Below, one piece after another: positions 7,417 through 36,600 of a stretch of DNA of 64,000 bases. Numbering within the stretch: position 1 is the stretch's first letter; the number at the start of each line of letters is the position of its first letter. The stretch covers positions 66,836,001 through 66,900,000 of the forward strand of contig OZ287751.1 in assembly GCA_965649765.1 (NCBI GenBank), given 5' to 3'. Below the pieces are notes generated by a model. It saw only the letters and a list, made by a program, of their open reading frames with translations. It did not search any database and was not told the DNA's origin. This stretch comes from Bispira polyomma (lineage: Eukaryota). A program made the position numbers and the translations under genes.

Positions 7417-8296
7417 GTCAGTAGGCTAATGGCCATTTCGTGGGTTATAACACCAAATACGTTGGGTGAAATTAATTTTTAGCCCAAGACATAAACAAAC
7501 ATAATTGATCTCACACAGAAGTATACCGAGAAACTTAGTGGTGATTCAAAATTCATGGCTCTGGACAAGGCTTTGTGGAGACTTAGCACCATAGAGAATG
7601 CCGTTACAATTTGATTTTTTGAAAATGTGTCATTTTTAAAGTATAATACAGTCAAACTGGTATAAGATGTCCACCTTACAAATCAGTAAACAGTGTTTTT
7701 TGTCGTGGGTGAGTGATGTTTGGCTTTATTATGAAATTTCTTACTAAAATATAAAGGTAATATTGAAGGCATTCTTGTATATTAGCTGTAATTATGTCCA
7801 CCCCAGTGGGGGGGTGGACATATTATTTTTGCTTTTTCCGGCGTCCAGCGTCTTCTTTTGTTTCCGGGCATTTTAAGGAAAAATATTTGACATATCTTTA
7901 CCAAATTTGGTATGACCAATAGTTAGGTCAATAGCTTGCTTGGGATTGCTTTTAGTGATAATAGCTATATAACTGACTCAGCAATAGTTACTTAGCTACT
8001 TTTAGTAGTAATAGCTACATAGCAAAAAACATAAATATGTCTATCTCCTAAACCGTGCGAGATAGAGCGATTTCGTCGAAATTTTCGACCCTCAGGGTAT
8101 CTAAGCAATGTAGTCTTGGCAATTTTGAAAAAAATTTTACTCTCCCGCGGCCATTTTGAATTTTCGAATTTTTGCCAAAAATGGAAAAACGTAAATTTGC
8201 TTCTATCTCCTTAACCGTGCCAGATAGAGTGATTTCGTCAAAATTTTCGACCCACAGGATATCTACAAAATGTACTTTTTATTGCGATAAATACAC

Positions 8297-8460
8297 CTTA
8301 CCTTATCCTCACTAACGCTATATAATTTAGTACACCTAAATGTTCGACCACAAAAATCACTTAAGTCTTTTTTCAAAGACTATTCTTGTGATTTGACCTA
8401 AATAAATCTCACCAACCTCACTGCGCATGCGCCGGAAGTCCCTTCAACTCTCGTCCTCGA
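8297..8460 (+). repeat. Left inverted terminal repeat of DIRS element
   Basis: reverse complement of 13519-13682 with 2 substitutions. Confidence 0.95.
8422..8439 (+). promoter_or_regulatory. NRF1-like plus ETS motif in the ITR (putative promoter; mirrored at 13540-13557)
   Basis: TGCGCATGCGC overlapping CCGGAAGT. Confidence 0.5.
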
Positions 8461-8689
8461 AATTAATTTGGTCGCCGTTGTGTCAACACCTAGTTCGATC
8501 TACTACTGGAGTTTTTGAAGAAAAATAGATGCTTTATTTCATAAGGCAGGATGTATTGTGGCTGAGGAACTTGCTTTCTACAGTTAGTTTCATCATTGGC
8601 AGCGTTTTTGGAGGGTTTACCAGACTTTCCATTTCGTTAGCGATCTTAACGTCCATTGCCGGTTTTGTCGAGTTTTGGAACAGCACAGG

Positions 8690-8838
8690 AGTCAACTTAA
8701 CACAACCAGATGTTGTGGTGTTAACTTTTCACAACGAGATGTTGTGGTGTTAACTTTACACAACGAGATGTTGTGGAGTCAACTTAACACAACGAGATGT
8801 TGTACAGTCAACTTAACACAACGAGATGTTGTGGTGTT
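8690..8838. repeat. 29-bp tandem repeat x5, each with a CACAAC-N5-GTTGTG hairpin
   Basis: cacaac at 8701, 8730, 8759, 8788, 8817. Confidence 0.9.
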
Positions 8839-10979
8839 GCCGGATAATTGTTTTGTGTGCCTAGCTCTGTATTCAGGGCATGGGAGGCACATAGAATTTT
8901 CTATGGCGAAGAAGTCCCAACAGTGATGTCTTAGCAGTGATGTCCCAACAGGGATATCCTAGCAGTGATGTCCTAACAAAGGAGGTGTGTTGAATTGCTG
9001 GTTGATTATTTGGTGGGCCTAGCGCTGTTTTTCAGAGCATTGGAGGCTCATCGAATTTTCTATGGCTGATACGCAGTGTTCTGATGGTGATGGCCTTACA
9101 GTCATGTCCCAACAGTGATGTCCCAAAAGTGATGTTACAACTGTGATATCTCAACAGACTCAAAGCTTATAGTTCATTGTGAACGCTGGAAGCTCTTAGT
9201 ATATCTTGAAGATGATGGTCCTTGAGGTTCCTGAAGGCTGAAGTTGCGAATACTACAGCTGCTGACCCCTGAGCTACCTGAAGATGTGAGCTACCTGGAG
9301 ATGACTGCTATGTTACTTATAGTTCATTGTGAATTCTGGAAGCGCTTACTATGTTCTACAGATGAAGATCCTTGTGGTACCTGAAGGCTAAAGTTGTGAA
9401 CACTACAGCTCCTGATGTCTTACAGCTGAGGATCCCTGAATTACCTTCCTGTCAGCTTTGCTACCAGTTCCGATACAAGGATAGAAGGGGACCTGGGCAG
9501 AAGAGGGTGAATCATCAGCACACAGGATTGGATAGGGGTTTTCTGACTAGGTTAACATCCAGTTGGATTTTCCCTGAGAACTGGAGGTGTAGCATCACTG
9601 ATGTACTTAAGATATCTGCTACAAAGAAGGGGACTGCTGTTTGCTGATAGTTCTCTTGTGAATGATAGAAGATCTTTCCAACTATTGCATCGATTTTTCA
9701 GCCATCCAATGCTTGATGTATGTGAGGTATGATCATTGCCAGTATAGAGGGACCCTGATAATGTTGTTATCAGTTTCACTTCAAGCTATATCGTCAAAAT
9801 TACTGAGGACTTTCTGATCGAGTTGAGTGGAAGGAGACCTAGGTAGATGAGAGTGAATCGTCAGCATATAAGTTTTACAGGACTTCTTTGGCTAGGGAAC
9901 TTGAACTTTCCCCTGAAACTGGAGATGTACAGAGATGATATTTCCACTGAAGCAGAAGATCTCACAATGTTGGGGAATTTAAAGAGTAACCAGAGAATCA
10001 TAGTGTCTTCTCAACAGTACTCATCACAGCCATCATATTCTTCTGATTCTTTGCTGATTTTCTTGACAGAGAGTGTCTACTTTTTCTTGGAGAATATGGA
10101 ATCTCTCAGACCCATGTTTTTTCCAGATTCCAGGAGGGATTCACTTTGATAGATGTGATGCAAGTTTGAAGATTGGGCAGAACACCGTCAATTTGCCATA
10201 ATAGCCATGTGTTTGACAGAAACCATTTTTTGTGGAGTGTCCTGGCTTCTCACAGTCTTATCAACAGAGATTTCTACCTAGACAGCCACGAACAAGTAAT
10301 GGTTTTTTTCTCTTAAATGGCTGAACAAGGCCAGGTTCTAACAGTAAAACAGAATACTTGCAGTATTCTAGTTGATTACAGTCTTCTCCACAGATATATC
10401 TATCAAAGACAGTTACGAGAAATCAAATGATGTTTAGTTGGCTATTTCTATTTCCGGGTGTGCTGTTCCCGAATTCGGGCCGTACTGCGAGATGAATACC
10501 AGGCTTACATTAATATGGACTCTTCTCTGAGTAAATATCACGTGGTGTAAGAGACGAAAATGGATATATTTGACAAATATTGTGTATGAAGACGATGCTG
10601 TGAGATCTGGGGAGAGTTCTCAATGTGATGACGGATTATGAATGAAGAGGGTTTACTACTGGGGATAGCAGTATATATAGACGAGGTGAGATTTTTCGAC
10701 GTCTTGTGAAAGAACGATCCCGTTGTGTACGGCTGCCTAGCTTCTCAAATTCAACTTGAAGAGGTATCTGAATATGGCAGTTTTGTTAGCGAAAATAGAT
10801 ATATTTGGGTGGCGTTAGACGTCTGGTACTCTTATATTCTATTTAATTCAAAGATTCGCCGAGATTCAATGGATTCGTTGTGAGGAATCATTAGTGTATG
10901 GGCGATAATAGGTGGCAGTAAGACCTGCCAATGTATACTTTTATGCTGGCGAATTTGCAGATATTCATGTTTCAGGTGG

Positions 10980-11230
10980 GGAAGCAGTTTCTTGCGAATA
11001 TTTTTGGATTATTCACCCTTGATGGATGGATATTTAAATTCTTCTGCAGGATTATTTTTCGACATTTTCAACAACAGTCGTGTTCAAATCTGGAATTTCT
11101 TCACAATATTTCACTCTGTGGGCTGGTTTATTGTTACACAAGGTCAGAAATCGATCCTAGACAGGAAATCGAGTTTTCTGGGCTATCATTTCATTCTAAG
11201 TCAGGTGACAAAGTCACTGACTTATTTGAA
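10980..11230 (+). pseudogene. Heavily decayed DIRS reverse transcriptase remnant
   Basis: TLDGWIF resembles YLDDWLI; RSEIDPRQEIEFSGLSFHS resembles KSxLxPxQxIxFLGxxxDS. Confidence 0.6.
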
Positions 11231-11699
11231 AGCAGAAGCAGTTTTTCTAGCATAGTGTTTTTTGAAAGTTTACCAATGAGAAACAACTGCTACAACAACT
11301 ACAGAGGCCTACAGTAAAGATTGCGCTACTTGTTTAAGAGATTTTATTCCAAATGGAATGAATTGGTTGGAGTTAAACAGTTTTTTGGCCTTGTTATCTT
11401 CAGCATCGAGTTCCATGCCAGAACAATTTCACAGTTTCAAGACCAGAGATAGGTTGATTATTACAGAATATTCACTTCATTAACCAATGCTCGTGCTTCT
11501 GTACATTTTTCCCACATCTAGACAGTTGGCTTTTTCATTGGTAATGGATGGAAAATGTTTTTGGTTGTGTGGTCAGGTTTTCCATTATATGCAGGACATG
11601 TTTAAGAACATTTGTCATTGAGGATGGTCCTCATCATAGGATTATTAGACGGGGAATATAAAGAAACTTAGGACCATTGCTGTGTAGGGTACCTGCTAT

Positions 11700-12070
11700 T
11701 TTGGAGATGTCTGAAACTCATAAAATGAATTAATTGGCATCTGAGCTTGCAGATCCTGTTTCACTAGTGTTCATTCCAGCCATTAAACTGGCCCTGGATG
11801 GTTTATTTGCTGGAATTATTTTTTGGTGTCCTGGCAGATCTGGAAGATATTATCTTGTTAGATCTGACACAGGTACTACTTCATCTTCATACATACAGTC
11901 ATATGCTGATGAGCTGCTTTGTTTTCTCTCAATTTTATATTTCTCTTCATGTGTGTGTTAGAGTTTTTCTATTTGGGAAGGTGATGCCGTCTGAATGTCT
12001 GTTTCTTGGCATGACGACTCGAGTGCAGTACCTTATCCATTAAATGGGTGATGGATTGTTTCTCGATCTG
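11700..12070 (+). pseudogene. Decayed DIRS RNase H remnant
   Basis: YLVRSDTGTTSSSYIQ resembles VxVRSDNTTxVAYIN, in the expected order after RT. Confidence 0.5.
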
Positions 12071-12109
12071 GGTTTTTTCATGCTCTACATGTTTTAGTAT
12101 ATGTATAGA

Positions 12110-12975
12110 GGCATGCTCTTATTACCATGTCTTCAAGTAGAAGGTTGGATGAATACTTGCTGGTTCATAAGAAATGTCTAGTGAAGTAACTTTATCCTTC
12201 AAATATAGCACCACTTACCATTGAGTGAAGTAGGCTGCTGGTTGAATACTTACTGACACATAAGTAATTGTTTAGTGAAGTACTTTCTTGGTCCTTGTAA
12301 TTCAGCACTGCTTACCATGGAGTGAAGTTGTTTTGCTGGTTGAATTCTTATTGTTCATTAAACTGTCCAGTGAAGTAATTCTTTTTATCCTTAAAGGACA
12401 GCACCACTTACATGTTGTTTGGTATGCTGTTGGTTGAATATTTTTACTGGTTGGTAACAAATTGTTCAGTAAAGTATTTTTCCATATCCTTCCAGTACAC
12501 CTTCACTTACCTTGGTGTGGAGGGTGTTGCTGGTTGAATTACTTGGTTACTAAACTGTCCAGTTAAGTAATTCTTTTGATCCTTTAGGACAGCACTACTT
12601 TCATTAATTTGAATAGGCTGTTGCTTGAGTGCTTACTGGTTCTCAAGGAACTGTTTAGTGAAGTCATTTTCGTTTACTATTAAGTACAGCGTCACTTATC
12701 ATGGAGTGAAGTGACTTTCTGGTTGAGTATTTACTGATGCCAGGACACTTTTCAGTGACACTTTCTTCTTATTATTACTACAGTTCTACTTACATTATCT
12801 GAGTGGTCTGTTAGTTGAATATTTATTGATTCACAAGGAAATTTCCAGTGAAGTGTCCTTACTTATCTTTGCAGGATAGCACTACTTGCCACAAAGTCAA
12901 GTAGTCTGTTGGTGCCCTACTTACTGGTTTCATTAGAAACTGTCCAGTGAAGTAATTTCCTTTGTACTGTCTACA
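12110..12975. repeat. Diverged ~96-bp tandem array (~9 units) inside the DIRS element
   Basis: agcaccactta..gctggttgaata..tgtccagtgaagta recurs near 12207, 12304, 12400, 12499, 12591, 12688, 12782, 12878. Confidence 0.85.
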
Positions 12976-13343
12976 TACATCTTTGCATGTGCTGATGACT
13001 TCTCTGTTTTCTCTTGCAAGCTTTTCATTAAGTGGCATCTTGTGAAGAGATCATCTGTGGGATGTGATGTCATTTTGATGACGGCTAAGCGTAATAGCCA
13101 GATAACATTATTTTCTTGGCCTATTGACATACATATGTGGTACATTCATATCTGTGTAGAATGCAGCACTACTTGTTATTCAGTTAGGTAGTTGGCTGTT
13201 TTATCAGACTTACATGCTTCTCCTGAAGTGACATGAGTAAGTCAAATGCCTTATCCTCAACAACTAATGCTTTAAAACTCCTTAATTCCTTAGGTGGGGC
13301 TTTGTTTCACACAAATAACCCTCCTCCTTCAAGGTTGGATTCA

Positions 13344-13447
13344 AGCGTTAGTGAGGATAAGGTAAGGTGTATTTATCGCAATAAAATGTAAAAATTTTAT
13401 TGTAATTTATCTTTTTGGAAGATAAATACTTACCTTATCCTCATTAA
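13344..13447 (-). repeat. Internal complementary region (ICR) of DIRS element
   Basis: 13344-13386 is the reverse complement of the left terminus; 13387 onward is the reverse complement of the right terminus. Confidence 0.95.
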
Positions 13448-13518
13448 ACCAGATCCCGTCCCAACCAGCCCTACTTTTAGTTGTGAAAACATCACCCAAA
13501 TTAATTGTGAAGGGTATC

Positions 13519-13724
13519 TCGAGGACGAGAGTTGAAGGGACTTCCGGCGCATGCGCAGTGAGGTTGGTGAGATTTATTTAGGTCAAATCACAAGAATAGT
13601 CTTTGAAAAAAAACTTAAGTGATTTTTGTGGTCGAACATTTAGGTGTACTAAATTATATAGCCTTAGTGAGGATAAGGTAAGTATTTATCTTCCAAAAAG
13701 ATAAATTACAATAAAATTTTTACA
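13519..13724 (-). repeat. Right ITR plus terminal extension of DIRS element
   Basis: 13519-13682 inverted copy of 8297-8460; extension matched by the ICR. Confidence 0.95.
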
Positions 13725-14836
13725 ATTGGCAATTTTCAAAAAAATTTCTTTTCCCCCAAAATGGCGGCCATTTTGAATTTTCGAATTTTTGCCCAAACTG
13801 GAAAAACACAAATTTGCTTCTATCTCCTTAACCGTGCCAGATAGAGTGATTTCGTCGAAATTTTCGACCCACAGGATATCTAAGAAATGTACTATTGGCA
13901 ATTTTCAAAAAATTTCCTCTCCCCAAAAATGGCGGCCATTTTGAATTTTCGAATTTTTGCCAGAAATGGAAAAACACAAATTTGCTTCTATCTCCTTAAC
14001 CGTGCGAGATAGAGCAATTTCGTCGAAATTTTCGACCCACAGGGTTTCTAAAAAATGTACTATAGGCAATTTTCAAAAAATTTTCCTCTCCCGAAAAATG
14101 GCGGCCATTTTGAATTTTTGCCCAAACACAAATTTGCTTCTATCTCCTGAACCGTGCGAGATAGAGCAATTTGTTATTACTCTCACACACCTTAATCAAT
14201 TGTAAATGTAGTTTATCATTACCTTACATCAGATTTTTATAAATAATAGTTAAATTATCTGTTGTGAAGAAATTTTGCAAAATTAATGGCCAATTTTCCC
14301 ACCCATCACTTTAGCTGATGGCCAATTTTCCTGATGGGATTTTTTGCTGATGGGATTCACTTGATGGACATTTTTCCTGATGGGCTTTTTTCAGGAATCT
14401 GTTACATGGTGTACACTACTAGGCAGTGCTTGTGTAAATGTGTTATGTACCATTTAGTTAGACAGCATTTTGTCCCCCTTGCAATTTTGACTGCCGTTTT
14501 GTCCCCTCGGTATTTTGTCTGACGACATTTTGTCCATGCAGTTGAAATAATTTACATGTATACTAATAAATTTTGGAGCATCGTTGATATATTTTACAAA
14601 CAAAACATTCCTGTAAGACTACTGTGCAATTGTTCCAAAAGGTTCATGGGGTGGACATTACACATGCTAATGTGTGTTCTTCTATGCTATCCTGTTTCTT
14701 TTCATATGTTGCAGCTACTCTTAACAGGGCGTCCTATTTCTAGTATTGAATTTTACTATGAATTATATTATATCAGTGATAATATCATGACTTTTTGAAA
14801 GGTTTATAAGCCTTTAACATTTTTATGTTGTTTCAG

Positions 14837-17800
14837 ATTTTGAAATGTTAAGTGAAGTTGATTTGAACACAGATAGCCAAAGTGAACCAAATCCTCCGGA
14901 AATTAAAGGTGTAGAAAATGACTTGGGTGAAAAGACTTCTGTTATGAAAGAGCCTGCTACCGCTATAGAGAGATTTACAGGATCACCTGGCCATAAATCT
15001 GCTGTGGACACAGACAGTAAGACAAACTCGAAGAAAACTCAAGGAAAATTACTGTGTAGGGAAGATTTATCATCACCAATGAAAGACTGTGTTCAACTTG
15101 GTGCTTCCAATCTGCCAGCCTCAGCTTATGAAACTTGTGCTGAGGGTTTAGAAACATCACACAAAATAGCCACTTCTACTGGAGGATCAATAAATGCCAG
15201 TGAAGTAAATCCTATCCAGTCAAATGATCAGACTGGAACGAATAGTGGTGCTTTGGTTACCTCTACATCGGTAAAGTGTAATATGGCATCAACTCCAAAT
15301 CTGGTTGATTCCTTATCTGAAGCCCAGCTGGAGAAAGATTCTGAAGAGAATGAATGTCCCAGTGGCCTCAGTGACCTGGCTCAGAAGTTTTTAACTACAC
15401 CAGAGACCTCTAGCAGTGGTGGGTCAGCTCCGGGTTCACAGAATAGTGTGGTTGTGAGTAGTTCAAACAGTAAAGTGGAGGAAGCAATGCAGAACAGTGG
15501 TGCAGATGTCCAAGATGCAGAAGGTGTGGTTAGTAGAAGAAATCAAGCTAGTTCCGAAGCCAACAGATACACTAGTGAAATTAAGACATTGCATAGTGAC
15601 AGTGTAGAAGATCAAAGATTGCATGATTTGGCAAAGGTTTCTGAACACAATAATATGGCAGATAAATCAATGGAGGAAAAATGTGGAAGGGATTGTGATG
15701 TTACAGATGAAGCTAAGGTACAAAAAAAGGCTCCAGCTCCAGTACAGTCACCATTTAGTGTAAACTTTGGTGTACAAAGTGCTATGTTCATGGGGCTCAA
15801 TTTTCCGAGTCCAAAGAAGTTCAGTTTGAGGATGAGCCCAGAGGAACGTAGATTGGAAGTGATGAGACAAGTGATCAAATCCTCGGAAGCTCATACAGCT
15901 CAGAAAGTAGATGGTAGGAAAGAAGAACCAGCTGATGATTTAACAATGAAAGAAACAGAGAAATCTGATACAGGAATGACATATGATGAATCTGGCAGTC
16001 ATGCCTCAGATGATAGCAAAGAAAGTAGTGAGCAGGAGGACCTCATAGTTGAAAAGGTTATAAGGATCAAAAACAGGAATTCAAGCGGTAATGCTAGCCT
16101 TGACTGTTCATCATCTGTAGTGTTAAAAGTTGAACCAGTCTCTGACTCTGAAGCAAAGAAAGATAGCACAAGGACCAGAAAGAAACAGCTTAACAGAAGC
16201 AGTGTTCACAGACCTTTGATAGGTCAGCTATTGGGAGAGGTAAACGATGATGGTGACACTAGCATAGTTGTACAAGTAAAAATTGATGCTTCGCCAGAGG
16301 CTGATGGTATGGCCATTGATGTAATAGCAGAAGATGGTGCCCAAAATAATGACACATCTGTCGAAAGTTTTGCTATGGAAAAGGTAGAGAATAGTGGAAC
16401 TGACGTTACAACCCAAAGTTCTCCTGAAGCTAGGGAATGTGTATCTGATGTGAGACAATTGGCAGATGTAGAGGAAGACATTCTCACAGTAGACACACTC
16501 AATAGTACCTTACTCAGAGATCAGAAACAGAAAAGAAAGACTTCTTTAATAACTAGACAGTCTGGTAAGAAGCAAAGGAAGGCAGGTAAGGTTTTCAGTA
16601 GTGATGAGGAGGGTGACTCTTTACATTCTAAAAAGACATTGGCTTCTGTTAAGAAACAGGTAAAGGCCCGAAAGCCGTCAGAAGAGAGTGAAGAGACTAA
16701 TGATGATGACTGGGTACCTAGTCCTGTCAAACAAGGTCGACCTAATAAAAGAGCCTCCCAGCCCAGGTTCTCCTTCAACAAAACTAAGTCTGTGGCGGAG
16801 AATATTCAGGACATGTTGACAACCAAGAAATCTGCTGAGCTAGATAGTAGTGTCCTATTTTCAGAAAAGATTCCAAAAGGAAAGTCAGCAGATAAGAGAC
16901 GTGGTACCCAGGCCCGTAGGTCTAGCAGGAAACATCGCTTATACAACGAAGGCGAGAGTATGTTGTTGTTGTCTGAAGCTCCGGATGGTTTACAGTCAGT
17001 TGCAGAAGAAGCAATAAAAGAAACAGGAAATACAAAGGTACCAACAAGCAATAGTCTCAAAGTTGAACAGAAGCTTTCTCCTGAAATGAGAGAAGGAAAT
17101 TCTCAAAGCAGAAAGGCAGGAGAGAATGAGCAGGTTAACAGTGAGCTGCCACAACAGGACAATAACAAAAGTGAAAGGACATGTATGGATAAAGAGAAAG
17201 AGGATAATGATGATGTGCATGCGTCTACCCTGGAAGATATATCACAGAGCAGAACCACCCCTCGCCTATGTTTGTTTGCTGCTGTTTCTGATAATGTCTC
17301 AGAAGAAGGTAGGGGTGACATTATAGATGGGTCATTTACAGCAGAAGAGAAGGCAAGTAGTATAGAAACCAAAACTGGGACAAAAGAAATACTGGATGTT
17401 TCTCCCATTATTGTTGTACAAGGTGGAAGTACCTTTCATGTGTCTCAACCATTGGTATTGTTAAAGTCTTTAAATTTAAGTGACACAGGTGACTTTACCG
17501 TTTTAAATGAAGGTCAGAATAGAACTCTCAATAACTTAAATAAACATAATATAAATAAATCTCTGTTGGACACACAAGGCACAGATGTAGTTAATACGAC
17601 TACTGATGACAAAAACCAAGATTCAGTACTGAATAAATCAAATGCTTTAGAAGATCATAAAACTTTAGTACCTTCCACAAGTGAAAATAGTAATCAGCAA
17701 GATGTCAATACAAATGCTACAGAACATTATTACCAGTCCTGTGATGATGCTTTTGCAGAGAGTGAGGTCTCTGATTCAGAGAATGTTGAAGGGAATGTTC

Positions 17801-18394
17801 AGGAAGATTCCGGAAGAACTATTTCAGAACCTGCTGGAAATGGCCATGTGGCAGAAGAGATTGTTGAGGATGTTGATGTAGTTCAAATGGTGAAGGGTCA
17901 AGCAATGCGTTCTGATACAGAGATGTCCAAAGGAAATATTACTGAACGTATATTACAGGATATTCCTGAAAGACTTGGTTTTTCCAGAGTTTCTGAAGAG
18001 CCTCCATTAATGTCTAGCCACAGTCGAGTGGACTTTAGGAGCCAGAAAGCTGGTGAAGCAGAGATGGAAGATATGGAACCGGAGAAAGAAGTAAGCGGGA
18101 GCAATGAATTTATAGAGAACAAAACTAACACAGAGGTGGTTTCTAGATTAACAGAGAATTCAGACAGAGAAGGGTTTTCTAAAGTATCAGGAATCAATGG
18201 TACACTAGCTTCAACTGCAGAATCCTTGGTAAAGTCAGTATCACCACTAAAAGGGAAAAATGACATGAAGAGATTTGTAAACCAGAGACAGGAAGAATCA
18301 GATAACTTTCAGGATGGCAAATTAGTTAAAGATACTGACTTTCATAGTGACTACCAAGATGGGAGAGATGGTGAAAACCTAACCAGGGAAAAGG
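14837..18394 (+). CDS. Giant 3,558-nt coding exon, Ser/Glu/Asp/Lys-rich, likely disordered, with basic NLS-like clusters
   Basis: 1237-aa ORF; tttcag| phase-1 acceptor; G|GTATGT phase-1 donor at 18395. Confidence 0.88.
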
Positions 18395-18434
18395 GTATGT
18401 GCCTGCATAATCATTTTAATGTAGTAATGGACTG

Positions 18435-18640
18435 TATGATTGATTGGGCTTTAATGTCGCTATTAACACATTGTATAGCGTCATATCACGACAGGCAGTT
18501 TTACTTGTGGGAGGAAAGCAGTGTGTACCTACTAGTTGGTCAAGATTCTGCACTATAAACCACCTGGCATTGGCAAGTAACTGCTAACTTTCCGACATAA
18601 CGCCATGGCCCAGATTCTAAACCACAACCTCAACATCTAT
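18435..18640 (-). mobile_element. tRNA-derived SINE related to 6302-6570
   Basis: reverse complement contains gtgcagaatcttgaccaact and ggaaagttagcagttacttgc. Confidence 0.65.
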
Positions 18641-18948
18641 ATGACTACAGACAGGGCATCTTCTATGGTGCATCTCCTAATCATGATCCAACAAAGACTA
18701 GTCCGATTGGAAAGGCTCAAGATCAAATAGTCCAGTCGAAACCTGATCAAGGAGTGCAGTGATATTTTTAAAATGAACATCTTTTGACATATAAATCTGT
18801 TTTTGTGAATATATTGCCTCTTTTTTGAATTGCGAGCATTGTTATTACTGAGTACTCTTCTCGTTTTTCTTTATACAATTTCCCAGCATTATGTTTCAGA
18901 AAGTATAAATTTGATGGATCAGTATATTACTTTCCTTTTGTGTTGTAG

Positions 18949-19682
18949 ATCAAGACATCAGTATTGTCAATACCAGTAGCCAGCCTGTATCTACCATTGT
19001 TGAAGTTATGACTACCACAGACAAGAGTGATGAAGTGATCCCCATTTCCTGCAAGTCTAGTGAAGAAATCCCCTCTCCTGATAAAAGTAGTGAAGTGATT
19101 CCACCTACAGATGAAAGTGTTTCTACAGGAGTAAGTACTTCTTGTGGGGAAGAAAAGGCTGTCAGTTCACAATTCCCACATGGTCATGAGCAGGACAAAT
19201 TTGAAGAATGTTCACCTAGTCAAGTTGATAAACTAAATAGTCACACATGTGATAACTTCCCTTCAAAATGTTTAAGTGGTGAGAATCTTAAAGACTCTGT
19301 AGAACAGCTTCCTGAAGATCATTTGATCGAAAGACAACAGCTTTACAAAAGTCCCACAATAACACAAGGCAGAAATGGTATGGACTCATTGCCAGGAGAC
19401 TATACTTCTAATGAGAATAAAGAAGAAGAGAAGTACATGTATGTAGAAAAAGCTGGAGACCAAGATAGTATAGAGAAACTTCTAGAAGCTTCCCAGATAG
19501 ATGAGATCAGTCCACCGTGTGGAAGTGGGAAAAACCTTACCTTCCCCACACCTGAAATGTCCTTGCAGTGTGCTCAGAGGTCAAGGCAAGGTGAAGGCCA
19601 CTTGTCTCAAATTCAAGGCTTCATTGAGGCAGCATCGAGTCAGGATGATGCAGATGATTTGAGCAGATTATGTAATTTACAG
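18949..19682 (+). CDS. Host gene coding exon with three ~10-aa xxxKSxExIP repeats
   Basis: ttgtag| phase-1 acceptor in frame with ORF 19008; CAG|GTAATT phase-0 donor. Confidence 0.85.
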
Positions 19683-20724
19683 GTAATTATGTATCGCATA
19701 ATATTAGTAACATCAAAATGGTTTTTGGCAGTTATTTGCTTTAGCTTTGGGAAAATAGTTTTACAGGTGTAAATTTAACTTTCTCAAGGTCACATGATCA
19801 AAAACAAATTTTCACGTACACTTGCTTGTCAGCACTTTTTCTCAGAAAATATTTCTTGTAACTCAAAATTCCAAAATTTGACATACATGTTACTGACATT
19901 AATGTCTAGACCAAGCCGATTGTCAGATCAATATAGCCATAAGCAAGTTATGGATGAGTATTTATCTAATGCTACAAAATACATTAAATATCCCCTTGTG
20001 GCACATATTTCAGGTTTTCATCATGAACTAAACTGACATATCTTTCATATTTTATCTAAATAGGACGAGTGGATGCTTTAATATGATGAGCCTTATGTTT
20101 AAGGTTACCTAAAACTCCATCAATTTCTGAATGATGCAAGAAAATAACAATTTTAGCTTAGAGTTTAAACTTTAATAAATGTTGTGTGAAATGCATAATT
20201 TAACCTTAAATTAATGGTGTCATGCAAGAAAAACAAGAAAAGTTTGCAGTTTATACATGTTGAAGTAATCTAAATGGTGTTTTAGTATACTACCTATAAA
20301 TTTTCTGGTTTCTGTGAAATACCAGTTCAGACATTTGCTTTCAGTTTGCTGCAATTGGACCCAAAACAAAACTGCGATTTCCAGTTTATCGTTCACAACA
20401 TTGGGTATTTTGTTGTGTGACTTTCTATGACTCAAACACTCTAGTAACAGGGTCATCCATTGTGTTCTTGAAATTCAATTTTCTTCAGTAAACTGTCACA
20501 TTTCTCACACTTTCTATAAACTACAATGGTGGCTATAAAGCAAATAATTAACTTTAAAATTGGGTGACTTACATTTAAAGCCCTAAATGGGTTTGCTGCA
20601 AAATACACCAAAGACGTGCTATAACATTATATAGACCAGCAAGAATATTAAGATCAATCAGTGATTAGGCATGTTCTGATGCTTTTTAGGTTATTTTACA
20701 GTAGTAATACTTGTATTTCATTAG

Positions 20725-26920: not shown

Positions 26921-27739
26921 TTGATATTAATTTTCTCTGTATTAGTTTAATATAACACTTCTGATTGCTCTACTGAATCTTTGGAGTTGGAATGTTTGTT
27001 TTGGAATTACAAACTGCTATCAAACTAAATCAGGTTGTTTTAAGGTGTGGTGTATTCCACCTGATGTGAGTTTAACATTCACACCGGAAGTTGCTACTGA
27101 GTAATTACAAAAACTGTCAAAATGTTTTATGAGGTGTATTTTCAGCAGAAATAACATATTTATTTATGACTATTATTACGGAAGTAGGTAATGTTGTGTA
27201 CTTATAAAGGATATGCTAGGTAGACCCAACGGGGGTAGTGAGTTCAGTTAGACCTTAAACTCTTTTATTAAAACCATTCTGGTTCTTTGACCTTATTGGA
27301 TGGCAGTTGGCCTAGATTCTATAGCAATTCCCGCAAAAAGCCATAGAACCTCACTTTAATTTAAGAAATTGAAAGGGCAGAACGCCATTTATAAACTTTC
27401 AGATTTTCTTTATTTTATTTTTTATACTTTATTTTACTCTTTTATTTTATATTTGTGTGTGGTTTTACTAATAACCGAGTCTTCATATATGTTGTAGTCA
27501 TGGAATGAGTGCTGTCTGGACTAGAAAAGTGAACTGCTGGCACCTGACTGTAGTGTTTTGTCAAAACATCTTTGACATATGCGAATTTTGCTCTTTTTCT
27601 AGGGCTTTGGTTGAGGACTGTTATTAATCTTATTTGAAATTTATTGAAATTTATTTGCTATAAAAGTTTCAACAGAAATGACCATTGTTATTGACTACTT
27701 TCTGGGCATGCGCCCTCCTAATTCTATCAATTTTACTTG

Positions 27740-28594
27740 TCTCATCCCACGGGACTGTGGAGCAGACAGAGAACAGTCAAATTGCTAATAGTGTTGCAGC
27801 TAATGCTGCAGCAACAGCTCCTGTGACCCATCCTGTGGCTATGGCCACGTCCATGCAGTCAACCGTTCCTGCTGAGGTTCCCGCGATTCTCAACTGCCCA
27901 CGGCTAAGGATCCAGAAGATACACTGGTCCCCTCATTGTCCACACTGAAAACTTCAGAGTATCTCCAGCACGCTGTGGATTCCAGGCTGCGCAACTTGGC
28001 TAGGATAAATGAAAAAAGTAATTTTAAGTCACAAAGAGGCAGAACTGAGATTATTTGGGTAAAATGCCAGGTTGCCTGGCCTCAGAACCATATTCTAGGG
28101 GGTACTACAAAAAATCGCACTACGTATGATGGCCTCTCTATGGTCCAATGGGTTTATGGGTTTTGTTCTATAATCAAAGATGAAAACAATGTAGAATTAA
28201 AAAATGCCATGTTAGAGTATGCCCAAGATCTCATGGAAGACTGTAATGACTTTTCTTGGACGGCGGCTAAAGCTAGTCACACAGTACTGTTATGTCGTAT
28301 GGGGGAAGGAAAAGTCTCGTGGGATGAGACAAGTAAAATTGATAGAATTAGGAGGGCCCATGCCCAGAAAGTAGTCAATAACAATGGTCATTCCACATTT
28401 ACAAATTCCCTTGTAGGTACTTCCAGAAAGGCTCATGCCCACACAAAGTGGATCATGAAACAAAAGGGCAGATGTACTTGCACACTTGTTCTACTTGCTT
28501 AAGCTTTGGTAAATCACTTCCCCATGCATCAAAAGACTGCAACCGAAATAAGGCTAGTACATTTGGTGACCAAACTGGTTCAAAAAACGAGTAA
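27740..28594 (+). pseudogene. gag-like ORF1 with C-terminal Cys/His zinc finger, frameshifted
   Basis: ORF 27936-28502 plus shifted frame PCRYFQKGSCPHKVDH..HTCSTC..HASKDC..SKNE*. Confidence 0.7.
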
Positions 28595-28878
28595 GGAACT
28601 GCAGTACAGCAGTGCCCAAAAGTTATACCAAGATAATTGTAATTCTCTTATACATATCAAAGATCGAAGTCAGTATTGTTGTAGTCGTACTGTGTATAAT
28701 GTGAATATAAACAACCAGAGTGACAACTGGAGGGCTGATTGGACTGGTTTGCAAACAAATCCTATGCTCAAGTAGTAAAACAAAATAGGGGTAATGAAGG
28801 TCAAAAGTATTTTTCTAAAAGTGTAACAAAAATGGCCAAAACAATCCCTCCAATTGTCGCTCAGGTACCAATAACCAA

Positions 28879-30998
28879 GTGTTTACAAATGTCTCTGTAA
28901 ATAATGTACACAATTTCAGGAAATTTCATAAAGGTGTGAAAAACAAATGTCACACCCCAAGAAAGTGTGTGAATGTCCAAAAAATTTTTCACTCAAATGT
29001 ACAGTTTCAGACCAATGGCCAGAGTCGCACCTCTGGTGTGAATGCATGTGACAAGGTAATCTCTAGTGAAACGTGTAAAACAAAGTGCCAAAATAGATTT
29101 GCACCCTTACAACATTTTGATGGAGGTGACGGCACCTACTATTCAAATGACAAAATGGCTTCTGATAACAATGTCCCTAGTAGTCAATGTGAGGACAAGT
29201 ATGAATTGCAATTACAAGTGAAAAGAAAACACAGAGAGGTTATTGCTAAAGAGGGAAACAATCCCCTTTTCAAAAAAAGGAACAGCCAAAATAAAGAGAA
29301 ATTTGGGTTTATTCCTCTAGGTAACCTTAAGATGCCAGATGAGATTAAGGCCGGTTCACACTTAGGCGATCCCCTTGAATTACACAAAACAGTTAAAAAT
29401 CAAAATTGTCCAAATTTCTTGGGTGCCCAGATACCAGTGGAATCTGAACTTTACGTCAATAAATGGGAAAAATTATTAGATAATTACTGGGACAGTCAAC
29501 TGGTACACCTCATCAAATTTGGCTTTCCCTTAGATTTTAATAGAGCTTGTCCCCTAGAAAATAAGGGAGCAAACCACAGCTCTGCTACTATGTTTGAAGA
29601 GGACGTTAAGGCATATCTTAAAGAGGAAAAAGAATTGGAGCAATCATTGGTCCTTTCAAAGAGCCCCCATTATCCGGATTGCATTTCTCTCCCTTCATGA
29701 CTAGGCCGAAACCAGATGCTAAGCACCATAGAGTAATAATTGATTTAAGTTGCCCACAAGGGCAAGCAGTCAACTCAGCTATAAATAAAGATTAGTACTT
29801 AGATACTCCTTTTATCCTTACGCTTCCCACAGTAGATGACATCACTCGGAATATTGTCAAACTAGGTAAAAGTGCATTATTATACAAGCTAGACATTAGT
29901 CGTGCCTTTAGGCACGTAAAGATCGACCCAGCCGACTATGACCTACTAGGGCTTCAACTCAATGACTACAATATTGATACATGCCTGCCGTTTGGCTATC
30001 GCCACGGCAGTGCTATATTTCAAAGATTCAGTGACGCAATTCAATTTATGATGATGTCACAAGGTTATGACGTTGTAATTACATAGATGACGTCATTGGT
30101 GACGGTCTTCCAGATACCATTGCTGACTCATTTGTAAAATTTAAAGAACTTTTCCCAAAATTAGGCTTTTCCATCAGTCAGAAAAAAGTGGTTCCACCTA
30201 GTACTAAAGAGTTTGTCTAGGGGTTTTAGTGAACACAGAGGACTTTACTGTCTCCATACCAGACAATAAACTCGCTGAGATATAACAGATATGTCTCTCA
30301 TGGACTAACAAAAAAGCGTGCACCAGAAGACAGCTTCAATCGCTACTGAGCTCGTTATTATATATCTCGAAATGTGTGAGAACTTCACGAGCTTATCTTA
30401 ATAGAATGTTAAACACCCTGAGGGGTTCACAAAATGCTCAAGAAATTAAGCTTGAAAAAACATTTCATCAGGACCTTAGTTGGTTCAATACTTTTTTTAC
30501 AAGTTTTAATGGTATGGCTTTCTTTGAACACAAACCAGTCACAGATCAAGTCCACCTAGATGCATGTCTGCAAGGCCTGGGTGCCTGATGCAACAATGAG
30601 GTCTATACCAAGAAATTCCACTTGGCTATAAAAATTATACCATAGTCCATCTCGAAATGGTTAATATACTAGTCGCAATCAGAGTTTGGAAAAATAAATG
30701 GGCTGGACGCAAATTACTTATAAACTGTGACAATCAAGCGGTTGTATCTATTCTAAATTCAGGTAAGACTTATGATCTTACTCTGGCAGCAATGACCAGA
30801 AACATTTTTATGGAGGCTGCAAAAGCAGACATAGAATTAAGAACGGTACACTTCCTAGGCAAAAAAAATGTCACAGCAGACTTACCCTCCAGGTGGGCTA
30901 TCACCCCTAATAATGAAGGACAATTAAAGGGCTTAATGCAAAATCCTAGTTGGATACAGGTCAATGATGACATCCTGGAAGTAAATTGGTCAATCTAG
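28879..30998 (+). pseudogene. Reverse transcriptase/RNase H, multiple frameshifts and stops
   Basis: FGFPL, NHSSA, RVIIDLS, KLDISRAFR, LPFG, YIDD (30080-30091), HLDAC, CDNQAVV. Confidence 0.92.
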
Positions 30999-31797
30999 CT
31001 TTAAAATTTTTCAGGCTCTCCAACCTGGGTGTCAAAGCTTGCAAAAAGAGCAGCTAATAGAGCACATCAGGCATTTCGTCCTTCTACACATAAAGCATAC
31101 ACAGCCATGTTCAGAGTATTCTTAGCTTACTGCTGTTTTGCCAATATCTCAGTTTACAACATTACACTTACGTCACTCCTTACCTTCTTAGAAGTGCTAG
31201 TAGTGAACAATACTTCACATACTTCAGTATCAAATTACCTCGCTGCCATTAAGGCCAGTATGTCATTGTATGGGCTTCAGATTACAGCCTTTGCGGACCA
31301 GAGAATAAAATACTTTCAAAAAGCCCTGGTCCTACACAAACCATTTAAAGCCAAAATAAATGGCATTATTGATATTGATCTATTGCAAAATATAGCCCTT
31401 ATCTGCGACTCCATGTATATGAGACAAATTTATAAAGCAGCTTATCTGCTTGCATTTTTCTCTTTCCTCAGAATTTCTAACTTAGTTCACACTAACAAGC
31501 TACTTACTCACCACTGCACCAGTTAGCTAGGGCCGACGTTATTTTCACCCCTGCAGGTGCCCACATAATCATAAAATGGACAAAAACTGTACAAGCTAGA
31601 AACACAATAAAGGTCATTAAAATTCCTTCATTGCAAAATAAAATTATTTGCCCGATAACTGCCCTAAAAAATTTGTTGGCAATTACTCCAGGCCATAACA
31701 ATACCCCATTGTTCCAAATTAAAAGTAATTCTCAATGGATCACCCTTACTGACACCAAAATACGTAGAAATCTTAAGGACATCTTGAATAGACTAAA

Positions 31798-33637
31798 TAA
31801 TCTAATCTAATCGTACTTTTATAGCGCTTAATCTTTGTACAACAAATTCTAAGGTGCAACTAACCTAAGCATTAATCAAAAAAAATCAGAAATGAGGGAC
31901 GGATGGTGGTCATAACCCGAGAGACTACCGGGATGGTTGTGATGGCTAAGGTGGAAAGGCCTGTTCGAAAAGGTAGGCCTTCAGTTTACTCCTAAAAGAG
32001 GAGAACGTTTGAGCCAAGCGAACATGATCAGGCAGGCTGTTCCATATGAAGGGGCCATCATGAGCAAGGCAATGATTGAAATGTACTTTGGATTTGTGGA
32101 TGCGAGGGTCGAAAGTGGGAATGTTAAGATATAACTTATCAGGGTTACTGCGCCTAGTCCTGACTGAGCATGTATATTTGGATAGATGGGGGCTGAAATA
32201 GGTGGGTGATCCAGAATTTAGAAATTTGTATATAATTGTTGCAATTTTGAAAGCAACACAATATTTTATTGGGAGCCAGTGGAGTGACTTAAGTACAGGA
32301 GTAATATGAGAAAATCTAGAAGTTTTGGCCACGATGCGAGCCAATGAGTGTTGAACGTTCTGAAGACGTTTGAGGTCACTACAAGATAGGGAACGGAACA
32401 GAGAGTTGCAGTAATCAAGCCTACTGCTGACCAAGGTGTTGGCAACAGTGATTGCAGTGAATTTGGTTAGATAACGCCTCATTTGCCTGAAATCACGGAG
32501 CCTAACAAAACATGACCTACACACGGATGCAACATGGTTGGAGAAGGAGAATTCAGAGTCAAACAACACGCCCAGCTTGCGTACTTTGTCAGCTGTGAAA
32601 AGCCTGCTGCCAAGAATATCAACTGGGAAACAGCTGGACAGTTTTTCCCGTTGCAACTTGGAGCCAAACAAAATAAACTCGGTCTTATCAGGGTTCAGCT
32701 TGAGTTTATTTGCTGCCATCCAGTGTTGTACATCGACAAGGCAGTTCTGTAAGGAGGTGAAAGCTGCCTGGGCAGAATCGGGTGTAAGGTGGATGTACAA
32801 TTGGGTATCATCTGCATAGAAGTGAAAGTTTATGTTTTTGTATGCAGCAATGATCTTGCTGAGTGGGGTGGTATACATTGAGAACAAAATAGGACCCAGG
32901 ACTGAGCCCTGGGGAACCCCAAATTTTAACCATGTAGGGTCGGACAAGATGGTGCCAATTTTGACCGATTGGAATCTATCAGACAAATACGCCTTGAACC
33001 ATTTAAGTGCAGTACCGTTGATACCAAACCAAGACGATAGGCACTCAAGAAGAACTTTGTGATCAATAGTATCAAATGCCGCCGACAGATCCAGCAGTAC
33101 TAAGGCAGTAGGCATACCTTTAGATAAAGATATATGAACGTCATTTTTGATGCAGAGTAGTGCAGTCTCTGTAGAATGACCACTTCTGTATGCTGACTGA
33201 TACTTATTGCATAGATTACTAACGTCAAGATGTTGTTTGATCTGTAAGGCGACCACGCGTTCAACCAACTTAGAGATATAGCAAAGGCCTGAGACAGGAC
33301 GGTAGTTTTTCAAGTCAGCCTTTGGGAGAGAAGATTTTTTTATTAAAGGAGTGACAATGGCTTTTTTAAAATCATTTGGAAAGACACCATTGACCAATGA
33401 GAGGTTAACAAGTTTGGTGATTGAGGACAATAAAATGTCAATACATTCCTTAACAAGGAATGTAGACCACGGATCTAACAAGCAAGATTTTACGAGTGAT
33501 GTAAGTATAATTTTCCGGACCTCATCAACAGTTACTGTGGAGAAACGGTTGAAGATGGTTGGTGGAGCTGATGGTAAAGGAGCATTTGGGGCAGCTGATG
33601 TAAAACTATCACGGATTCTGGTAATTTTATCAGTAAA
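31798..33637 (-). mobile_element. 5'-truncated CR1/L2-type LINE
   Basis: (GATTA)3 tail after aagcgctataaaag; taaa shared at both junctions; removal restores the YR frame. Confidence 0.92.
31946..33637 (-). CDS. LINE ORF2 reverse transcriptase and C-terminus, uninterrupted but lacking endonuclease
   Basis: NYRPVS, LDLSAAFDTIDH, GVPQGSVLGP, YADD, LHWLP. Confidence 0.93.
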   Translation of the reverse strand, partial: FTDKITRIRDSFTSAAPNAPLPSAPPTIFNRFSTVTVDEVRKIILTSLVKSCLLDPWSTFLVKECIDILLSSITKLVNLSLVNGVFPNDFKKAIVTPLIKKSSLPKADLKNYRPVSGLCYISKLVERVVALQIKQHLDVSNLCNKYQSAYRSGHSTETALLCIKNDVHISLSKGMPTALVLLDLSAAFDTIDHKVLLECLSSWFGINGTALKWFKAYLSDRFQSVKIGTILSDPTWLKFGVPQGSVLGPILFSMYTTPLSKIIAAYKNINFHFYADDTQLYIHLTPDSAQAAFTSLQNCLVDVQHWMAANKLKLNPDKTEFILFGSKLQREKLSSCFPVDILGSRLFTADKVRKLGVLFDSEFSFSNHVASVCRSCFVRLRDFRQMRRYLTKFTAITVANTLVSSRLDYCNSLFRSLSCSDLKRLQNVQHSLARIVAKTSRFSHITPVLKSLHWLPIKYCVAFKIATIIYKFLNSGSPTYFSPHLSKYTCSVRTRRSNPDKLYLNIPTFDPRIHKSKVHFNHCLAHDGPFIWNSLPDHVRLAQTFSSFRSKLKAYLFEQAFPP

Positions 33638-36600
33638 ATCACAAGCTAACATCACCTTCCATACTTTTAGACATTCTGGGGCGACAATGGCCTTTAATGC
33701 CCATGTGCCCCTCCAAGACATTCAAAGTCAGGGCATCTGGTCCTCTGAGTGTGTTTGGAGATATATCACTCAGGACCATGCGGCCTCTGACCAGGTAGCC
33801 CTAGCTCTTCAATCCCTCCTCAACCCTAGTTCTACTTCCTAATAGGCCTTGGCGGTTATTGTCTTTTTACTATCATTTATATGCTATAATTTTTAAACTT
33901 TATTATATACTTAAGGCCACCTTATAGGCTAAACATTTAATAACCTTAACTAGATAGATGTAAGGCTAAGACCAGCAGAAATTGTGTAACTCGTTAAGGT
34001 TACCTTAAATTGTGATAAACTTTAACTTACGTTAACCTTAAACTCTTAGTTGATATAAAGTCACTTTTAAGGTGAACTTAGACTAAACTCTAAAACATTC
34101 TTTTAAGGTGGCCTCAATTATTTCAAAAAATTAATTTTAACCAATTGTAACTGTATGTGTAGTAATAGATTAAATGTATATATCCCAACTGCTAGTCTTT
34201 CTTACAAGGTCAACATTCAAAATTCAAGGTCAGGGCACTGTCAGTACCTGATGGATGCATACATTAAGTGGCTTTAATTGTATCAAAATGGTAAGCATAG
34301 AATGAATTTTATAACTCACCTTTTGATGATTTCTTGAACCTTTCTTCGAAATAAATATATACCCTTTCCCTTCAAACAAACGAATGATAAAATTGCTCCT
34401 GGTCTAAACATAAAAGTATACATTATCAAGTAATGCAGCATCGATCAACTTACACAGCTTTAAGAACATGTCTTTTTAAAAATAATGTTGAGTATATGAC
34501 TGTAGCATATTAGGCAATATAACATATAAATGATGTGTAAATAAGAGAAAGCTGTAAAGTATGAGTGAATGACTTGGATATCAGAGGCACAATTGTAACC
34601 AGCGTGATCAGATGCCTAATTTGAAATATTGAAAAAGAATGTTTTTTATACAAATAAACCACAAGTGTATAACAATGGCATAACCTAACAAATTACACAT
34701 GATGAGATATTATAACGATATTGAAATAGTGGATTTAAAACCGACATTCCAAGTGATTATTCATGATATCAATCATCTGTCTAATAGGTTCAGTAGTGTA
34801 GTGGTTATCACGTCCACCTTACACGCGAGAGGTCCCCACTTCAATCCTGGGCTGAACCTTGAGACATTTTGTACTACAAAACCACAAACAAAAATTGAAG
34901 CAATTAATTTCACTAAAAGTATTTAAATTGACAATAACTGATTGATTTTATTCTCTCTAGGAATAAAGCATTAAATTGACCAATATGTATATGTTCATCT
35001 TGTGCATCGAACAGAGTATGTTTGTTTTTACTGGATGCATTTAAAATTTTATGTGTATCAGCCTGGAGTTAAACTCCGATCGACTGTTTGGAAGGCAACC
35101 ATGCTAACCGCCACACCACTGACGCTTGATATTAATTTTCTCTATGTTAGTTTGATATTACACTTTTGATTGCTCTGATGAATCTTGTGGCGTTGGAATG
35201 TTTGTTTTAGAATTAAAAACTGCTATCAAACTAAATCAGGTTGTTTTAAGGTGTGGTGTATTCCACCTGATGTGAGTTTAACATTCACACCAGAAGTCGC
35301 CACTGAGTGATTACAAAAACTATCAAAATGTTTTATGAGGTGTATTTTCAGCAGAAATAACATATTTATTCATCACTATTATTACGGAAGTAGGTAATGT
35401 TGTGTACTTATAAAGGATATCAGTACCTGATGGATGCATACATTAAGTGGCTTTAATTATATCAAAATGGTAAGTATAGAATAAATATTATAACTCACCT
35501 TTTAATGATTTCTTGAACCTTTCTTTCAAATAGATATATCCACTTTTCCCTTGAAACAAATGAATGATAAAATTGCTCCTGGTCTAAACATACAAGTAGG
35601 CATTTTCAAGTAATACAGCATCGATCAACTTACACAGCTTTAAGAACATGTTTTTTTAAAATAATGTTGAGTATATGTCTGTAGCATATTAAGTAACATA
35701 ACATATAAATGATGTGTAAATAGGAGGAAGTTGTAAAGTATGAGTGAATGACTCAGATATCAGAGCCACAATTGCAACCAGTGCAAACAGATGCCTAATT
35801 TAAAATTTTTGAAAAAGCATGTTTTTTTACAAATCCACCACAAACGAAAATTGAAGCAATTAATTTCACTAAAAGCATTTAAATTTACAATAACTGATTA
35901 ATTTTATTCTCTCCGGGAATAAGAGATTAAATTGACCAATACGAATATGTTCATCTTGAGCATTGAATAGAGTATGTTTGTTTTCACTGGATACATTTAA
36001 AATTTTAAGTGCATCAGCCTGCAGTCAAACTCGGACCGACTGCTTGGAAGGCAACCATGCTAACTGCTACACCACTGACGCTTGATATTAATTTTCTCAA
36101 AATTAGTTTGATACAAGATTTCTGGTTGCTCAACTGAATCTTGTGGAGTTGGAATGTTTGTTTTGGAATTACAAACTGCTATCAACCTAAATCAGGTTGT
36201 TTTAAGGTGTGGTGTATTCCACCTGATGTGAGTTAAACATTCACACCAGAAGTCGCCACTGAGTGATTACAAAAACTGTCAAAATGTTTGATGAAGTGTA
36301 TTTTCAGCAGAAATAACATATTTATTCATCACTATTATTACGGAAGTATATACATCTGAACTTACACAGCTTTAAGAACATGTCTTTTTTAAAATAATGT
36401 TGAGTATATGTCTGTAGCATATTAAGTAATATAACATATAAATGATGTGTAAATAGGAGGAAGTTGTAAAGTATGAGTGAAGGACTCAGATATTAGAGGC
36501 ACAATTGCAACCAGTGTGATCAGATGCCTAATTTAAAATTTTTGAAAAAGAATGTTTTTTTTTACAAATCAACCACAAGTGTATAACAATGGCCTAACCT

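Follow-up and report, generated by a model that had tools for sequence, protein, structure and literature searches.

A non-coding family of probable DIRS1-like retrotransposons with inverted ends and an internal complementary region in the Bispira polyomma genome

The 64,000-nt stretch of Bispira polyomma DNA analysed here (contig OZ287751.1, positions 66,836,001–66,900,000; hereafter the window) carries on its plus strand, at positions 8277–13724, a 5,448-bp element that belongs to a multi-copy family. All element coordinates are positions in the window, and the genome searched is a eukaryotic assembly totalling 1.035 Gb in 75 contigs. That the element represents a non-coding mobile family is well supported. 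Very probably, it is a large non-autonomous DIRS1-like family that is copied in trans by the Gag and reverse transcriptase (RT) of helper elements, has its ends rebuilt on the right arm and the internal complementary region (ICR), and is inserted by a helper tyrosine recombinase (YR). A long-lived, large non-autonomous DIRS lineage mobilised in trans had been proposed in an earlier note made from the window's sequence, and the proposal gains support from the dead interior that the copies share and from YR-motif elements that carry the same end core.

The family comprises 15 full copies with identical ends on 8 contigs (5.41–5.60 kb, 93.3–98.1% identical, with common first and last bases) as well as partial copies. 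A 24-mer from the stretch of broken motifs in the interior occurs at 152 genome sites and a family-specific 31-mer from the inverted terminal repeat (ITR) at 190; these counts are lower bounds on copy number and point to a family of about 150 copies or somewhat more. Four full copies (L005, L006, L008 and L010) share both flanks, which leaves 12 independent insertions among the 15. These four are found on three contigs, each time at one and the same position within a larger repeat, with flanks 95–98% alike over more than 1 kb per side, and the element was carried along there inside another multi-copy unit. Elsewhere, an inverted or nested copy is present on contig 6 at 30.16 Mb (L019/L028/L029). 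One locus, labelled as a human-gut metagenome contig (L039), was left out of the comparisons.

The copies were compared column by column, with neither a consensus nor a mended frame being built. At least 10 of the 12 independent copies have 271 stop triplets in common, and the longest run free of shared stops, with private changes ignored, is 132 codons. The longest frame is 106–241 amino acids per copy and at most 131 codons in the window copy. Variants are spread evenly over codon positions (35/31/34 and 26/32/31), 46 of the 59 near-private deletions shift the frame, and the arrays and duplications of the interior are kept in every full copy. Because this dead interior is common to all copies, the family spread while non-coding: the copies multiplied after coding capacity had been lost. 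Furthermore, the tree of copies contains several well-supported clades with tips of 0.9–3.1%, so that several already dead elements acted as sources. The near-identical copies with the same decayed interior that the earlier note had looked for are thus present, and neither of the outcomes that it held to be contrary, a single copy decayed in place or an intact YR or RT inside, appeared. Its description of the lineage as recently mobilised agrees with tip branches of 1–3%, but ongoing activity is not demonstrable.

The ends of the element are inverted. The left ITR (8297–8463, plus strand) and its inverted partner, the right ITR (13516–13682, minus strand), differ at 3 of 167 nt (98% identity); the 2 differences in 164 bp reported earlier are correct, and the arms extend slightly further. 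The ICR is complementary in one half to the left terminus (8277–8319, plus strand, 43 nt), which opens with the T-run of the junction, and in the other half to the right terminus including the right extension (13664–13724, plus strand, 61 nt). The ICR itself (13344–13447, minus strand, 104 nt, divided 43+61) is the reverse complement of 13664–13724 joined seamlessly to 8277–8319, with 1 mismatch in 104 nt, which bears out the earlier observation that it copies both termini and makes it the template of an end-to-end junction. In all 15 full copies the 3′ ICR is complementary to both extremities, which meet at the junction, with 0–4 mismatches over ~104 nt. When the ICR is folded, inverted arms flank the junction with a short spacer between them (z −8.1). 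The first 19 nt of the left ITR form an end core that is found in each ITR and in each half of the ICR (at 8297, 13348, 13429 and 13664). A fifth copy of an 11-nt end motif (13249–13259, plus strand) stands 103 nt ahead of the ICR and is also found at 3806825 on contig 1, in an element with coding motifs. The ITR is ~180 bp long in most copies, the window copy having a private 12-nt deletion near 8460, and the aligned inverted repeats span 102–187 nt across the 15 full copies. The observed/expected CpG ratio is 1.5 in the left ITR vs 0.37 in the interior. In one copy (L015, 1168–1611) a 127-bp duplication repeats the junction within the ICR region.

These ends agree point by point with the ITR-and-ICR anatomy of DIRS1-like elements described by Piednoel et al. 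2011 (PMC3266345). The length of 5.4 kb falls inside the published range of 4.0–6.3 kb, the ITRs, right extension and ICR are shared (with the latter split 43+61 here and 43–61 in XtDIRS2), and so are the TTT start, the NTT end, the AAA junction, the lack of a target-site duplication (TSD) and a short motif, of 10 nt or more, that the two ITRs have in common with each half of the ICR. The differences lie inside: the Gag, RT–RNase H–methyltransferase (MT) and YR frames of autonomous DIRS1-like elements were not found in any copy read, and the interior has been remade by duplications and a 96-bp array. Split direct repeats of the Ngaro, PAT or TOC1 type are absent from the element, the ends of which are inverted, as are the direct long terminal repeats (LTRs) with TSDs that define large retrotransposon derivatives (LARDs). 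The element is DIRS1-like in all cis features but is not an autonomous member of that group.

The window copy interrupts a host 168-bp tandem repeat (7955–14172) at 8276/13725. Its flanks, when joined, equal a sister 168-bp unit exactly, with nothing gained or lost, which confirms the precise insertion without a TSD claimed in the earlier note. The trinucleotide ATT that follows the element (13725–13727, plus strand) derives from the target. Across the 17 right junctions, NTT is found in every case (N is A in 11, T in 5 and G in 1), whereas the T-run at the left comes from the element. In the left flanks, A occupies position −9 in 15 of 17 cases and −8 in 14 of 17 (p ~4e-6 and ~4e-5, respectively). 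Flank overlaps amount to 0–4 nt, with no duplication of fixed length, and the target bases just left of the cut are unlike the element's own spacer. This pattern fits the presumed action of a tyrosine recombinase with A/T arms as its recognition sequence, although the number of insertion sites, 17, is too small to define the target site. The 168-bp repeat family contains or adjoins two independent insertions, those of the window copy (repeat at 7955–8276 and 13725–14172) and of L016 (left flank), and the positions in the repeat differ between the two.

The earlier note contrasted pristine ends with an ancient interior, but this contrast in age is not borne out. Between copies, the ITRs differ by 6–7%, an excess partly due to one divergent clade, the interior by 4.5%, and the ICR together with the right end by ~2.5%. 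The two arms of one copy, on the other hand, differ by 2.3% on average vs 6–9% between copies. The arms within a copy therefore match because they have been homogenised and not because the ends are specially young. Copy-private substitutions are present in both arms of L002 (two substitutions), L003, L007, L010, L011 and L012; L011 additionally carries a private change in both its right tip and its ICR, and L009 and L014 carry a 1-nt insertion at all four core sites. Such mirrored mutations are as predicted by the end-rebuilding model of DIRS-1 (PMC7192593), according to which the right arm serves to restore the left one and the ICR serves to restore the tips. In the same study, the cDNA detected was linear and single-stranded, and amplification of a circle junction did not succeed; replication through a circle, which the earlier note took as established, is a model.

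The exactness of the ICR and the mirrored mutations also bear on an alternative in which an element of the same ancestry moved as DNA, with a helper recombinase or transposase excising or copying it without an RNA step in the manner of non-autonomous Cryptons or miniature inverted-repeat transposable elements (MITEs). Long inverted ends, the lack of coding capacity and a junction that folds as arms around a spacer would all suit such movement, but it gives no reason for an internal copy of the joined ends that is near-exact in 15 of 15 copies, or for private mutations mirrored in arms 5 kb apart. DDE-mobilised MITEs, moreover, make TSDs, whereas the insertions described here have none. We consider this alternative improbable.

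The interior of the element has been reshaped. It contains a 29-bp tandem array (8688–8838, plus strand) with 5 units in the window copy and a unit number that appears to differ among copies, followed by old local duplications with a period of ~150–160 bp and embedded 14-bp arrays (8814–9446, plus strand) that are present in all 15 copies (8814–9296 vs 8974–9446, 65% identity over 501 nt; 9166/9316, 83%). A second old duplication spans 9484–9929 (plus strand; 9484–9591 vs 9830–9929, 72%). The earlier note had recognised the local duplications of the 5′ region but had missed a 96-bp array of 9 units (12122–12958, plus strand; 69–77% identity to one unit), which occupies the expected place of MT and YR in all copies. 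This array has expanded by ~280 bp at 84.03 Mb on contig 6 (L018/L027). A match of a YR 33-mer within the array, at 12489, was not significant, as 3 of 100 shuffles scored as well and three queries had been tried.

A probable RT fossil occupies 10881–11620 (plus strand), where the longest stop-free stretches, 122–132 codons in three frames, are found. By eye, LDGW stands here in place of the YLDDW of DIRS elements, and pieces resembling GW-I-V, QEIEF and LGYHF are distributed over two frames; all these putative pieces are broken alike in all 15 copies. RT ancestry of the interior is an impression gained from these motif pieces. The RT and RNase H that the earlier note called barely recognisable could be seen by eye only, and no search scored them above chance. 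Pfam searches with 10 pieces, word searches, phmmer against 1.84 billion proteins, the ESM Atlas and PDB all returned blank for the protein identity of the interior, tblastn with Ngaro pol, YR and Gag queries gave no match to the element, and a Ngaro profile for RT/RNase H that allows for frameshifts scored 35 on the interior vs 38 ± 3.5 on shuffles, with a positive control of 1178. The C-terminal YR motif is absent from all 30 family loci, in agreement with the earlier note, and a scan that included L039 gave no match there. Possible recombinase remnants, VFIPAIK and LDLTQ pieces, can be seen by eye at 11760–11880.

Because RT ancestry of the interior is unscored, the interior might instead have been kept for a function, as a non-coding RNA, as a small-RNA decoy against coding DIRS elements, or as captured non-DIRS cargo. 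Its full length is kept in all clades and its variability does not exceed that of the ITRs (4.5% vs 6–7%), both of which would be expected of a maintained sequence. Yet Rfam holds no match for it, its substitutions and indels look neutral, and internally deleted copies that keep both ends exist (L020; L024/L030), which together make a function unlikely. Decay of an autonomous family in place, with extra copies made by segmental duplication and arms matched by gene conversion, would account for the four copies inside the larger repeat, but it is already largely refuted and highly improbable, given that unrelated flanks together with exact ends are seen in 12 of the 15 full copies and that stops, frame breaks and arrays are common to all clades.

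Mobilisation in trans calls for helpers, and candidates are plentiful. The 19-nt end core has 10,190 matches in the genome vs 0 in the control, and the cores form triads 4.5–6.8 kb long. A codon pattern was derived from the C-terminal motif of DIRS recombinases, which we take to be W-x-S-x-x-T-F-x-x-F/H-Y, and it matched the genome 3,108 times vs 174 in the control. In 19 of the first 32 matches to this pattern on contig 1, an exact core lies 0.56–1.27 kb downstream in the ICR orientation, so a YR motif, at the least, is present in many core-bounded elements, of which the present family makes up a few percent. One such element (contig 1, 3801687–3807268) shares the five-site arrangement of the 11-mer with the element described here (spacings of 115/81/237 vs 103/81/235); a YLDDWI stretch follows after 2.4 kb and a YR motif after a further 2.2 kb. 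Another candidate, within 3429400–3435750 on contig 1, likewise has its ICR cores spaced by 81 nt, and one copy of the commonest family lies within 2090450–2096400 on the same contig. These candidates were located by coordinates and short patterns, the genome sequence having been read at 30 loci. DIRS1-like sequences as a whole are very abundant in the genome, with 10,190 cores, ~3,100 YR motifs (one family being dominant) and ~950 RT motifs of the YLDDW type, which belong to several families. The absence of YLDDWL inside any exact-core triad had suggested that most of the 10,190 cores belong to elements without genes, but the YR motifs near cores overturned this view. Pfam Dam and LAP2alpha profiles had no match in the genome, and the genome's PF00589 matches did not coincide with the listed DIRS RT motifs. 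Beyond this genome, the end core gave 10 single matches and no triad in metagenomes, which we took as chance, and the DIRS RT pattern was not found in viral contigs.

Combining these findings, we propose the following course of events. An ancestral DIRS1-like element would have lost its coding capacity long ago, with local duplications reshaping its interior while the cis signals stayed. Transcription would start from the left ITR, and the RNA would be copied in trans by Gag and RT from a DIRS family that has genes and carries the same end core; the mirrored arms and the ICR lend this RNA step indirect support. The right arm would then serve as template for rebuilding the left arm, and the ICR for rebuilding both tips, yielding an end-to-end junction, as the mirrored mutations suggest. 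Finally, a helper tyrosine recombinase would insert the product without duplication at AT-rich targets with the pattern AA-N7-NTT, which is the one seen at the insertion sites.

Several points weigh against this reading. The autonomous DIRS with similar ends that the earlier note called for is matched by YR-motif elements that share the core, candidate helpers known from coordinates and motifs, the frames of which may be intact or broken. Beyond the core, the ITR sequence is specific to the present family, with 190 sites against 10,190 for the core. In the commonest family with a YR motif, the YLDDW patterns did not catch an RT motif, and that family may be defective too. No search scored the interior as DIRS-derived, the reference proteins used being of the Ngaro type. 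The count of mirrored arm mutations (38 vs 6.9) is inflated by the L009/L014 clade, and it is the private cases that carry the argument. Mirrored arm mutations could also arise by conversion between the arms after insertion, although such conversion explains the core insertion at four sites in L009/L014 less well.

Non-autonomous retroelements and the activity of DIRS-1 in trans are already known, and the mechanism is thus not new. LARDs are large and non-coding, with intact termini, and are mobilised in trans; they have direct LTRs, a primer-binding site and polypurine tract, TSDs and an integrase. The likeness of the present element to them is one of life style only, as it lacks direct LTRs and TSDs. 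TOC1 of Chlamydomonas reinhardtii has split direct repeats of the PAT-like type and a known partner, in contrast to the inverted ends and ICR found here. It is, like the present element, a non-autonomous DIRS-order retrotransposon, and is active (10.1101/2022.06.16.496473). SIRE of the SIRE/VIPER elements of Trypanosoma cruzi, which has been described as non-autonomous and as derived by truncation from a YR retrotransposon (PMC6681497), is ~430 bp long, of the direct-repeat type and of debated mobility, whereas the family described here is full length and shows evidence of having been mobilised repeatedly. A further parallel is engineered: in Dictyostelium, the laboratory construct trDIRS-1, a DIRS without Gag, RT and RNase H, moves in trans and requires the ICR (PMC7192593), and the present element would be its natural, long-lived counterpart. 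The earlier note held such elements to be little described, and we likewise found no description of a non-autonomous ITR/ICR-type DIRS family in the open literature; most subscription papers and Repbase entries were outside this coverage, and such families may be catalogued there.

Tentatively, and with confidence somewhat short of even, we suggest that full-length non-autonomous DIRS elements of the ITR/ICR type constitute an undescribed long-lived class. The present lineage would have persisted for long enough to leave its pol unrecognisable to profiles, and only the 19-nt core and the junction would be shared with its helpers, as a minimal and perhaps promiscuous signal, while several such lineages would coexist in this genome; the target suggests an arm-spacer-arm recombinase site that needs little spacer homology. 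DIRS elements are normally found by their RT, YR and MT domains, and gene-less families are therefore missed by standard screens or filed as unknown or terminal-inverted-repeat sequences. A natural non-coding family, in turn, isolates the cis signals for DIRS replication, with the 19-nt core, the junction and the ICR spacing as the candidate recognition site. The end-rebuilding of the 1985 model, which is partly unproven in the laboratory, gains genomic support from mutations that recur in the opposite arm or in both the ICR and a tip.

Other features of the window lie downstream of the element. Two acidic low-complexity frames of 1,237 and 254 amino acids (14845–19772), the first without a Pfam match, begin 1.1 kb beyond it and are probably large exons of a host gene. 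About 35 tandem tRNA genes occupy 36700–61883, mostly tRNA-Gly(TCC) on the minus strand and tRNA-Val(CAC) on the plus strand, with a period of ~960 bp in the first part. Between these, at 27685–33842, lies a broken Ngaro-like YR retrotransposon with pieces of Gag, RT, RNase H and YR, the YR gene of which is split by a long interspersed nuclear element on the minus strand with a 591-amino-acid RT frame at 31946–33721. An apparently intact Ngaro-like element from an ENA assembly (L041, 10716–15579), used as a reference only, encodes Gag, an 898-amino-acid pol and a 323-amino-acid YR.

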